A stretch of 43,680 bases of DNA, from the NCBI GenBank assembly GCA_977017575.1, contig CDRNVI010000031.1, positions 1-43,680 of the forward strand, written 5' to 3'. The position numbers were made by a program, and so were the translations under genes. Below are positions 15,346 through 30,600 of the stretch, piece by piece. The DNA comes from Paramoeba atlantica. Lineage: Eukaryota; Protista; Discosea. The notes beneath the pieces were generated by a model. The model searched no databases. It worked only from the letters and a program-made list of their open reading frames with translations, and was not told where the DNA came from. Each line of letters starts with the position of its first letter. Position 1 is the first letter of the stretch.

Positions 15346-16161
15346 TACAGGTTTACCTCGGAATGAAGAAACGCTAGGATTGGTCGCTCTGAAACGAGCC
15401 AAGCAATTAGCTCTTAGTCATCAGTATCTGTGCCTCGAAGCATTTCTTGTCTCCTATACCAGGGCTCGATACTAGCCGAGCGGCGCTTATGTTTTTCTTG
15501 CCTATCATCACATCACAGTAAGGTACAATCATTTACTCTTCTGCCATAACATCATACATTGTGTATGGCATTACACATCATTACCTACATGGTATCATAC
15601 ATTTGGTATAGCATACATACATTGGTAGCGCATCATACAGTAGTACAAACAGTAGTATACTGTACATACTGTAGCGTATCTGTAGTATACTGTATAGTAG
15701 TCAACATGTGCCAACGAGGCTATCCAATGCTGGTCGTGTATCGCATGGTGATGGACACGATCCCGTGAGGATACCCCTACGACCATTGATGCTCTCCGTC
15801 TAAGTGCTGGTCGTAATCTGTAAACTACATGTGATCCATAATTCTTGTCTCTTATTCCAGAGCTCGATCCTGCGCCTTGTCGTGGCGCTCTGGCTTAACA
15901 CCCGCAAGAGTTAACCAAGACATGTAGAAACACATTTGAACATTTGAAACACATTTGAAAAATGTGTAATGGGGTAATAAGGGAAATAAAATTGAAATAA
16001 ATCGCAACAAAATCTGCGCCGCTTCGCGGCTCCTGTTTTCTCCTACTGACAAATAAGTAGGCGGTGTAAAATTACTACCTTCTCTGAGAACTGACAAATA
16101 AGTAGTGCTTTGTCTTAGTAGGCAGAGCAGTACCTTGAACTAGCACTTGTACTTTAACACC

Positions 16162-16605
16162 ATGCAACGTGTCGTACGCGCGGTTGATGTCCCCTCTCGA
16201 CCCAGTAAGGTACGAAACGCGGTCCTCCCACAAGAATACAATATGTTTCGACTACTGAGTAACGCCAGTTTCGCTGAGGAGTCATGGACCGAGAAAACGC
16301 CTGCTTGTGTGTGGAAGCATGTGGAGTGTAACGATGAGGGAGAAGTGACAAAGACACAATGGACCAGATACGAAAGGGTATACGTGTATATACAGGAAGA
16401 GAAGAGAGTCTCTCTAAAAGGTGCACTGCGATTGATTTTCCTACCCGACACATTGACCTCCTTCGATGCTTCCTTGCAAGAGGTTTTGGAGGGGCACGTA
16501 GACTTGGCGGTTCTACCGGCAGGATTGAAAACGTTTGACATTCGTTCGAATCAGTTCAGCGGAGGTTTGGATTTAACCCATTTGCCGTCTACTCTGGAAG
16601 ATTTT
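16162..16605 (+). pseudogene. LRR subfamily A copy 1, 5' part (interrupted)
   Basis: High identity to intact 20349-21065 up to ...LPSTLEDF, then replaced by the SL-headed insert. Confidence 0.9.
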
Positions 16606-16609
16606 CTTT

Positions 16610-16641
16610 AACGATAAAGATACAGTTTCTGTACCTTGTTG
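16610..16641 (+). other. Spliced-leader exon copy AACGATAAAGATACAGTTTCTGTACCTTGTTG followed by GT
   Basis: Shares the ACAGTTTCTGTAC core, the TTG end and the AACG 5' block with the trypanosomatid SL AACTAACGCTATTATTAGAACAGTTTCTGTACTATATTG. Confidence 0.85.
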
Positions 16642-17427
16642 GTACATTTTGCTAGCCCTTCCTTTCTTTTCCCGGAAACGGGCATATTCTTACTTTTAAA
16701 TGCCCGTTTCCGGCTGACGGCTAGCTGGAACTGTTCCTCTTTGTCGCGGAAGTAGGGGACGCACTTCGCACTCTTCACCCCTCCCCGGCTCGCTCTCTTC
16801 GAGTGAGCTTTCTTCCCTCCCCGGCTCTCTCCTTCTCGTGCTTTCTTCTCCCGGGAGCTATGGCCTCCCTTGAGGACCACTGGGCGTGCTACAGCGGGAG
16901 GACACGTTGTATGCGTGTATAGGGGATGCGAACTTGCACCCCTCTCTCCCTACATGCTGTAGCGAGTGCGGCGGTAACGGACCTCCCCATGATGCATCAT
17001 GATCCACGATAGACCATCTGACAGCATGAACCCACGGCTTGACCGTGTTGCAGCATGAACCATGGCTATACGTGCTGTAGCATGACCGATGGTCACGGTG
17101 GCCTCCCTTGAGGACCACTAGGCGTGTCCTCCGCCGACGAGACTCCCGGCTCTCCGCACCTGGGGGTCGCCCAGCTCTCTGCACCCCGGCTCTGTCGCAG
17201 CTCTCTGCACCCGGATTGCCCCCGAAACTGTAATATGGGGATTACGCATCCGGCTCTCTGCACCTGCACATGACAACCGAGCTCTCTGCACCTGAGACCC
17301 CAGCTCTCTGCACCCGCACACCTCCGGCGAGGGCGAACCCTCACTTGATCCACCCGTCGCATGCGGGCACGGACTTTGTGAGCATAATCTCTGCACTATA
17401 AGTGCATGAACGAACAATGTGCATTGA
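16610..17427 (+). mobile_element. SL-headed non-coding SINE-like unit 1
   Basis: SL, nested hairpins (16650-16725), pyrimidine tract, 28-bp direct repeat (16861 and 17099), about 7 CTCT(C/G)CAC-type motifs, and 3' hairpin TGCACT-ATA-AGTGCA. Confidence 0.7.
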
Positions 17428-18007
17428 AAAGATGCAGTTTCTGTACCTTGTTGGTACTTTTTCCTTAGTTAATCCTTTCTTTCCCCGGCAACGGGCATAC
17501 TCTTACTGTATTTTTATGCCCGTTGCCGGCCGGCACTAAGGTCGGAACTCTCCCTCTTGTCGCTGAAGCAGGGGACGCGCTTTCACCCCTTCACCCCTCC
17601 CCGACTCACTCTCCTGGAGTGAGTGTGCTTCCCCCTCTCGGCTTTTATCGACTCGTCTTTTTCCTCTCCGAGAGGGCCATGCGTCACGGTGGCCTCCCTT
17701 GAGGACCACTAGGCGTGTCCGCCGCCGACGAGACTCGGTTCTCCGCACCTGGGGGTCGCCCAGCTCTCTGCACCTCGGCTCTGTCGCAGCTCTCTGCACC
17801 CGGATTGCCCCCGAAACTGTAATATGGGGATTACGCATCCGGCTCTCTGCACCTGCACATGACAACCGAGCTCTCTGCACCTGGGACGCCAGCTCTCCGC
17901 ACCCGCACACCTCCGGCGAGGACGAAACCTCACATGATCCACCCGTCGTATGCGGGATAAGGACATGGTGAGTAAATCTCTGCACTATAAGTGCATGATA
18001 AAACACA
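17428..18007 (+). mobile_element. SL-headed non-coding SINE-like unit 2
   Basis: Starts AAAGATGCAGTTTCTGTACCTTGTTG|GTAC. Homologous to unit 1 but lacks its 210-bp internal segment; same 3' hairpin at 17981-17995. Confidence 0.7.
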
Positions 18008-18210
18008 CCTTGGTCACAATAGTCTGTGCGGAAAACCTGATCTCACCAAGCTCCCGGAAGAGCTAACATGGGCCATGCTCCTTCACAACCTTTTCGTCAT
18101 ACCTGACTTTATTCCGGAAGGTGTTCGCATCAAGCCATATGTGAGAAAATAGCATCCACCCTGTAGATATAACCCATGCAGTCTGAAGAACCGACGTAAA
18201 AACATTTTTA
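18008..18210 (+). pseudogene. LRR subfamily A copy 1, 3' part
   Basis: ACCTTGGTCACAATAGTC...AAAAACATTTTTA aligns to 20857-21060. About 71 bp of LRR sequence is missing at the insertion site. Confidence 0.9.
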
Positions 18211-30574: not shown

Positions 30575-30600
30575 AAAGATACAGTTTCTGTACCTTGTTG
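30575..30600 (+). other. Spliced-leader exon copy AAAGATACAGTTTCTGTACCTTGTTG
   Basis: 26/26 identical to 16616-16641. Not followed by GT; an ATG follows 42 nt later. Confidence 0.85.

Follow-up and report, generated by a model that had tools for sequence, protein, structure and literature searches.

Covarying stems in the 5′ RNA domain of a spliced-leader-headed retroposon from Paramoeba atlantica

The nested stems at positions 16642-16775 of a 43,680-nucleotide stretch of Paramoeba atlantica DNA (the window, a term used here for that whole stretch) are the front of a dispersed, ORF-less retroposon in a genome assembly of 45.7 Mb. They belong to a 5′ RNA domain whose helices covary between subfamilies and whose predicted closing helices take in a relic of the spliced leader (SL). 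By analogy with better studied elements, we lean towards reading this conserved sense-strand domain as the 5′ module of a retrotransposition template, serving end protection or protein docking. New here are the quantified covariation of the 5′ domain, the strand and the level at which it is selected, and the predicted folding of the element body back onto the SL relic.

The retroposon and its family

The nested stems lie near the front of the first of two look-alike units, each composed at its start of the 3′ part of a kinetoplastid-type SL, then GTAC, then hairpins. Together with a truncated copy lying between them, they interrupt a leucine-rich-repeat (LRR) ORF, as follows.

16147-16611, + strand: upstream part of the LRR ORF, interrupted by the three elements
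16606-17092, + strand: unit 1, a family A copy without its last ~125 bp (blastn comparison with 28 further copies; four full-length ones aligned)
17093-17409, + strand: 5′-truncated family B copy, 3′ ~316 bp only (94% identity to 17683-17998)
17427-17998, + strand: unit 2, a full family B copy
17942-17956, + strand: 3′ motif of unit 2, CCCGTCGTATGCGGG
17991-18152: continuation of the LRR ORF past the elements

The translations of the interrupted ORF end in ...NQFSGGLDLTHLPSTLEDFL before a stop and resume at ...LGHNSLCGKPDLTKLPEEL. Many independent insertions share one codon position of the LRR, between ...LxxLxL and LxxNxFxG, with examples in the window (16560-16611 together with 17999-18152) and in the flanks of loci L003, L006, L008, L011, L014, L029, L030, L043 and L068. 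The upstream flank of such insertions often terminates in AAAGA, a pattern that hints at preference for a target or at microhomology between target and SL head. Elsewhere in the window, at 30575-30600, another SL-headed sequence has a head from SL nt 13 and a different body with an ORF; it is without the three-way-junction domain described below.

The 186 nt downstream of the SL represent a dispersed repeat (40 scored matches among 378 candidates). The 45.7-Mb assembly contains 171 exact sites at which the SL 3′ end is followed by GTA, and at least 150 full-length matches to a covariance model of the first 167 nt of the element. Full copies are ~613 bp long in family A and ~579 bp in family B; the two families agree in their 5′ ~283 nt as well as in a motif at the 3′ end (ACCCGTCGTATGCGGG, then ATCTCTGC...ATGA) and differ in the middle. 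The 3′ motif CCCGTCGTATGCGGG occurs 126 times. The aligned copies fall into about eight subfamilies with 92-100% identity inside a subfamily. In the divergent C and D copies, the three-way junction is all that is retained and the sequence 3′ of it is different, so the junction looks like the conserved core.

No sense-strand ORF of more than 90 aa is present in the element. The truncated B copy at 17093-17409 and the ragged heads of the copies are as expected for target-primed reverse transcription, and the flanks of four full copies are without a clear target-site duplication. Classification as a classical SINE, with a tRNA, 7SL or 5S head and an internal Pol III promoter, was rejected: the head is an SL relic, and no tRNA, 7SL or 5S match to the element was found in Rfam. 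Being short and dispersed, with young copies and 5′ truncation, the element is an SL-headed non-coding SINE-like, or non-autonomous non-LTR, retroposon. A search for its LINE partner, in which the list of reverse-transcriptase matches was compared with the 3′-motif sites and the extracted loci were scanned, identified none. Retroelements are very abundant in this genome: of 1851 candidate reverse-transcriptase matches, at least 150 exceed the Pfam cut-off, many of them in long open frames. Searches of the literature for SL-headed SINE-like elements in kinetoplastids and for the SL string retrieved no such report and nothing relevant, respectively.

Relation to the genuine SL RNA gene

The genuine SL RNA genes are found elsewhere, at seven SL+GTA sites (L036, L037, L049-L051, L066 and L045, on contigs C3, C11, C24 and C6) with conserved upstream sequence and a full exon. 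They carry an identical sequence of ~26 nt just upstream of the exon, which is 38 nt long, starts with AACTTTAACGATAAAG and ends with CCTTGTTG. Their intron begins in a trypanosomatid-like manner with GTATGAGAAGCTTCG, and the intron start GTATGAGAAG is common to the true genes. Since the genuine exon has 38 nt, the element carries only SL nt ~11-38. An identical 38-nt SL with the same intron start and a different upstream sequence was also found on the metagenome contig Ga0316204_10168667 (L145, 1-100), which, judged by this sequence, is from the same or a closely related organism.

The initial annotation had offered SL RNA intron stems as one identity of the nested stems, an identity that is not supported for this element. 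In local alignments, the element body is not significantly similar to the genuine intron (scores at least equal arise in 62, 315 and 73 of 500 shuffles), and GTA is all they have in common. The element was likewise rejected as an SL RNA gene, because its exon mostly begins at nt 10-12, its flanks are unrelated, its copies are dispersed and its body aligns to the SL RNA intron no better than shuffles do.

A looser relationship has more in its favour. In the genuine SL RNA, a GUACC/GGUAU hairpin forms and the exon pairs with its own purine-rich intron start, giving a predicted fold with an extended stem-loop I. The element shares with it a GUACC/GGUAC hairpin and the pairing of AGUUUC to a purine-rich strand, and would thus repeat the stem-loop I logic of SL RNA with a long hairpin inserted, a resemblance of predicted folds rather than proof of descent. 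The 5′ module could accordingly descend from SL RNA or mimic it, making the element an SL-RNA-derived SINE with SL-RNA-type stem-loops; exon and GTA follow each other exactly as in the genuine gene, and the SL-GTAC junction is kept in all 106 copies matched by a junction-pattern search. We nevertheless regard such an origin as unlikely. Apart from the dissimilar body, the exon is 5′-truncated in nearly all copies, and the dispersed copies do not have the conserved upstream sequence of the true genes. There is no clear Sm site; the single-stranded stretch CCCUCUUUGUCG, considered in the Sm-site check, is U-rich and is also the proposed 3′ strand of helix P0. Junction variants exist in which the SL is joined to TAC, ATTTT or CCC, and unrelated families carry SL heads as well, which indicates that heads derive from SL-carrying RNA generally.

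Rfam matched no known RNA. The searches with the whole window at the gathering threshold, and with the region and the full element at E ≤ 10 or E ≤ 1, returned only noise. Even the genuine SL RNA gene is missed by every Rfam model, and the silence of Rfam is therefore uninformative on kinship to SL RNA.

Fold of the 5′ domain

RNAalifold and separate folds of subfamily representatives revealed extra helices beyond the nested stems. The features of the domain in unit 1 are as follows.

16606-16641, + strand: SL-derived head, SL nt 3-38 (comparison with the genuine SL exon of L036/L037/L049-51/L066)
16615-16743, + strand: closing helices P0 and P1 (RNAalifold consensus; unit 1 MFE and centroid)
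16615-16620 with 16738-16743, + strand: P0, TAAAGA/TCTTTG
16622-16629 with 16727-16734, + strand: P1, ACAGTTTC/GGAACTGT
16631-16645, + strand: hairpin GTACC/GGTAC, which holds the 3′ end of the SL together with the GT after it (97.8% paired)
16651-16725, + strand: long arm, comprising outer stem, internal loop, inner stem and a variable U-rich 14-nt loop
16651-16657 with 16719-16725, + strand: outer stem GCTAGCC/GGCTAGC, 7 bp
16672-16685 with 16700-16713, + strand: inner stem, 14 bp, 14-nt loop
16746-16769, + strand: hairpin 2, conserved loop AGGGGACGC
16749-16753 with 16763-16767, + strand: arms of hairpin 2, GAAGT/ACTTC
16787-16809, + strand: hairpin 3, 9 bp, followed by a T-rich run

The corresponding stems of unit 2 are given below.

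17463-17469 with 17535-17541, + strand: outer stem CCTTAGT/ACTAAGG
17485-17499 with 17515-17529, + strand: inner stem
17565-17569 with 17579-17583, + strand: hairpin 2, GAAGC/GCTTT
17604-17624, + strand: hairpin 3

Of the predicted closing helices, P1 joins SL nt 19-26 (ACAGUUUC) to GRRACUGU directly 3′ of the outer stem, and P0 joins SL nt 12-17 (UAAAGA) to UCUUUG, which lies a little further 3′; the SL 3′ end with the following GUAC is predicted to form the GUACC/GGUAC hairpin. With the SL relic pairing to strands encoded by the element, the nested stems become the long arm of a three-way junction, and nearly the whole relic is probably base-paired inside this junction. P1 was recovered in separate folds of most subfamily representatives, including A, A2, B, B2, C1 and D, and in A, A2, B and B2 the pairing probability of the head nucleotides is ≥ 0.8. 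With one strand held constant by the SL, P0 and P1 cannot covary on both sides; their 3′ strands vary only by A versus G opposite U, P1 is 97.9% paired, and as helices of 6-7 bp neither has individual significance. On this modelling, their pairing is likely to be real. The core of the domain spans ~130 nt, and hairpins 2 and 3 extend it to ~200 nt.

The internal loop between outer and inner stems is asymmetric, its 5′ side being a 15-nt pure-pyrimidine tract (16658-16671; 17470-17484). This tract is unpaired yet conserved across all subfamilies, and could be a protein-binding site or the remnant of a splice signal.

Covariation of the helices

An alignment model was built from 29 copies, and 101 copies (96 distinct) were aligned. 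Over the whole structure, 93.4% of cells in the 96 distinct copies are paired; none of 500 column shuffles reached the observed percentage of pairing, the covariation score or the number of cells changed on both sides. When partner columns were displaced by one to three positions, pairing fell to 29-44%, and the RNA fold of unit 1 has a z-score of -7.6 against shuffles. These results extend to many copies what the initial annotation had read from two units that are 75-79% identical across their first ~285 nt, namely that the primary sequence has diverged with the pairing kept and that selection on an RNA structure is responsible: covariation is seen in four helices, G.U pairs far outnumber A.C, and the loops vary freely in sequence and length.

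The A-T to C-G change between the inner stems of the two units is present with the sequences as originally quoted, and across copies one inner-stem pair reads A-U 49 times and C-G 44 times and is broken just twice. For the outer stem, pairing and covariation between units had been described correctly, and its length in unit 1 is corrected from 6 bp to the 7 bp of GCTAGCC/GGCTAGC. The model-based alignment had placed the A-type and B-type outer stems one column apart (72.6% paired), and the stem was re-anchored on its invariant UAG/CUA core. The next pair outward from this core is C-G in 41 copies and U-A in 41, the second pair outward is G-C in 38, C-G in 23 and U.G in 20, and the first pair inward is C-G in 39, U-A in 36 and U.G in 7, with at most two mismatches at each of the three covarying pairs. 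In the anchored stem, pairing is seen in 297 of the 320 variable cells, whereas shuffles average 215 (sd 9), and in 64 of 72 among the 18 distinct haplotypes, whereas shuffles average 50; in both cases 0 of 5000 shuffles reached the observed value. The copy L025 (G000:C83:15075-15239) shows a private double change at one outer-stem pair, from G-C to U-A (TCTAGC...GCTAGA).

The second hairpin, noted earlier for its GAAGT versus GAAGC arms, is found in both units and is 95.8% paired, its closing pair being U-A in 48 copies, C-G in 23 and U.G in 19. One sub-lineage of eight copies has an A.C mismatch in this hairpin, which also competes with an alternative pairing of its G-rich loop. Hairpin 3 has one pair with the states G-C in 18 copies, G.U in 34 and A-U in 16, and two further positions with A-U 51 and G.U 16, and U-A 57 and U.G 10. 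There are only about eight subfamilies, so the independent compensatory events number ~8-12 rather than hundreds; even so, the structure-preserving change is far beyond chance. All copies compared are from this genome, since a metagenome scan for homologues of the element yielded a single SL RNA gene with an identical SL and thus no cross-species copies for covariation.

Strand and level of selection

All helices together contain 212 G.U cells versus 34 A.C cells, and G.U is held by at least three distinct copies at 12 pair positions compared with three positions for A.C. This excess points to the sense-strand RNA as the selected molecule. The antisense strand folds almost as stably as the sense strand, so that free energy alone does not choose between them.

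The same counts bear on the proposal that the stems are a DNA palindrome, or inverted repeats maintained by template-switch repair, with no selection on RNA. The inner stem is indeed a perfect inverted repeat with a short spacer, of the type that template switching keeps perfect, and both strands fold stably. Against this stand the ratio of G.U to A.C, the stepwise C-G/U.G/U-A series in the outer stem, the U-A/U.G/C-G or G-C/G.U/A-U series in hairpins 2 and 3, and the distance of ~60 nt between the outer-stem arms. The related proposal of a regulatory element exapted by the host at each insertion meets a different difficulty, in that the stems are not depleted of private mutations as a function of each inserted copy would demand. 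We consider both proposals, taken together, highly improbable. In the five large subfamilies, the share of sites with private mutations is 1.73% where bases are paired and 1.52% where they are not (Fisher p = 0.38). This equality of stems and loops indicates that inserted copies decay neutrally and that the RNAs under selection are those of source elements. Only in lineages founding new subfamilies are the stems kept, and the selected function is propagation of the element, not a host role at each site.

Origin and boundary of the SL head

Among 78 distinct copies, 25 have a head starting at SL nt 11, 10 at nt 10 and 16 at nt 12-14. Head starts range from nt 3, in the window copy (unit 1), to nt 27; heads reach at least nt 8 in nine copies and at least nt 6 in five. 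Unrelated SL-headed sequences among the extracted loci show the same preferred start at nt 11. As these families lack the fold, the boundary is not made by the three-way junction; it is a general property of retroposition from SL-carrying RNA in the organism. The boundary, with the last 28 nt kept, coincides with the site at which SLACS/CZAR/CRE elements interrupt the trypanosomatid SL; SLACS and CZAR insert after SL nt 11, leaving 28 nt downstream, as in the relics here.

Twenty tandem SL relics were found genome-wide; in 15, the junction immediately follows an AG that lies within the older head. The new SL 3′ end lies exactly after ACAG of the older head in 13 and after AAAG in two, and one of the 13 is a copy of the three-way-junction element (L114, G000:C37:314226-314249); another example of a tandem relic is L018:140-200. 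Tandem relics are the signature of repeated re-trans-splicing and retroposition of copies that were already SL-headed. Three copies carry the SL fused behind the AG in GCTAG, a point 14 nt inside the body. A genome pattern search for a headless master copy with AG before GTAC gave no matches. Only the SL precedes GGTAC in every copy, and the SL-GTAC junction is therefore inherited.

These junctions offer some ground for a role in trans-splicing, with the SL-complementary strands and the pyrimidine tract either docking SL RNA, so that an SL must be added at the 5′ terminus of the element, or hiding internal acceptor sites. The strands of P0 and P1, complementary to SL nt 12-26, follow directly after the outer stem, the 15-nt tract is conserved in all subfamilies, and headed copies do undergo re-trans-splicing. 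The AG in the 3′ strand of the outer stem is not used as an acceptor: a search for retroposed copies with the SL attached there, a junction that would delete the domain, found none. We judge this role very unlikely nonetheless. Present copies have no AG before GTAC, so SL addition there cannot recur, folding in cis explains the complementarity equally well, and we know of no precedent in kinetoplastids for the docking of SL RNA by base pairing.

The initial annotation had also suggested a 5′ ribozyme, for which no positive evidence was obtained. HDV-like ribozymes are nested double pseudoknots (P1, P1.1, P2, a 3-bp P3 and P4) with a catalytic C in J4/2. The covarying helices of the element are nested, and an attempt to thread them by hand onto an HDV-like fold failed. 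A self-cleaving ribozyme, either belonging to a new class or being a very derived member of the HDV-like type, could still be imagined to free the element's 5′ end from read-through transcripts, as in R2 and L1Tc. The start of the structured domain is no more than one or two nucleotides away from where the element usually begins, and with 106 headed matches against no headless copy, source copies need some way to make their 5′ end; R2 itself uses a 5′ ribozyme (PMC3774820). The case is outweighed by several features of the element, and we hold self-cleavage to be quite unlikely. No Rfam ribozyme family matches even at E ≤ 10, and the three-way junction has no P1.1, P2 or 3-bp P3: the strand needed as P2 is already paired as the outer stem, and P3 would be an arm of 7+14 bp. 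Moreover, head starts are scattered between SL nt 3 and nt 27, and unrelated families without the domain equally have the nt-11 boundary.

A proposed 5′ module of the retrotransposition template

Of the three identities suggested initially, a recognition or retrotransposition element is, we infer, the most plausible. Several otherwise differing families retain a very stable fold at the extreme 5′ end of the element. In the proposed mechanism, the DNA copy of SL nt ~11-38 in the element would pair, at the RNA level, with its own downstream sequence to give P0, P1 and GUACC/GGUAC, and the paired relic together with the long nested hairpin would place a three-way junction at the 5′ end of the template. 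Extrapolating from R2, such a very stable fold would protect the template from 5′ decay and favour full-length copying, and the domain may in addition offer a docking surface to a putative partner LINE protein during 5′-junction formation. It would thus parallel the structured 5′ end of the R2 template without being an HDV-like ribozyme. In R2, thermodynamically stable 5′ folds of the template raise the efficiency of insertion, probably by limiting 5′ decay (PMC11331408), and non-autonomous R2 derivatives are described as keeping a structured 5′ end together with the 3′ end (PMC3414825). Host-derived 5′ sequence helps 5′-junction formation in R2 (PMC3774820).

A more ambitious reading, which we think doubtful, would make the domain an active device: a new class of self-cleaving ribozyme trimming read-through transcripts at the SL relic, or a built-in docking site for SL RNA. 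If docking were true, the retroposon would capture the trans-splicing machinery of its host for a capped, defined 5′ end.

Non-autonomous retroposons usually reveal the needs of their LINE partner. The element described here has, besides a 3′ signal, a 5′ RNA domain under clear selection that is, on the predicted fold, built partly from the spliced leader of the host. Should the favoured role as a template 5′ module hold, it would provide a natural example, in a trans-splicing protist, of the importance, only recently recognised, that template 5′ structure has in R2-type insertion. An RNA of ~130 nt is experimentally tractable, and natural compensatory variants are ready as controls.

Comparison with known systems

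The closest parallel is with R2 and its SIDE derivatives. Both they and the present element have a conserved, very stable fold at the extreme 5′ end of a non-LTR RNA (PMC3774820, PMC3414825, PMC11331408), a fold that short non-coding derivatives keep along with the 3′ recognition end (PMC3414825). Both also carry host-derived 5′ sequence, which is 28S in many R2s and the SL in the element (PMC3774820, PMC3414825, PMC11331408). Unlike the double pseudoknot of R2, the fold predicted here is a three-way junction; the searches turned up neither a ribozyme match nor a catalytic core, and the host-derived sequence is a spliced leader that would itself be built into the helices.

Pr77/L1TcRz of ingi/L1Tc, NARTc, RIME and SIDER resembles the domain in being a conserved 5′-terminal module of kinetoplastid retroposons, common to autonomous and short non-autonomous elements in trypanosomatids (PMC3185411, PMC4035085). 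It differs in being the 77-nt promoter and HDV-like ribozyme signature of APE-type LINEs, whereas the 5′ end of the present element is SL-derived and its domain is longer and folded differently.

SLACS, CZAR and CRE are, like the element, SL-associated elements of kinetoplastids, and members of the CRE clade insert at one fixed position in SL RNA genes (PMC12278014). The copies described here are instead dispersed, often in LRR genes and not in SL genes, and have neither an ORF nor a poly(A) tail.

Finally, the SL-relict retrogenes of dinoflagellates are, like the element, DNA copies of trans-spliced RNAs with a 5′-truncated SL, and they show re-splicing at an AG inside an older relic, as do the tandem relics in this genome (PMC6050394, PMC5585692). 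In contrast to those retrogenes, the tagged unit here comes from an organism of kinetoplastid type and is a mobile non-coding element, whose body has probably evolved to pair with the relic that it carries.
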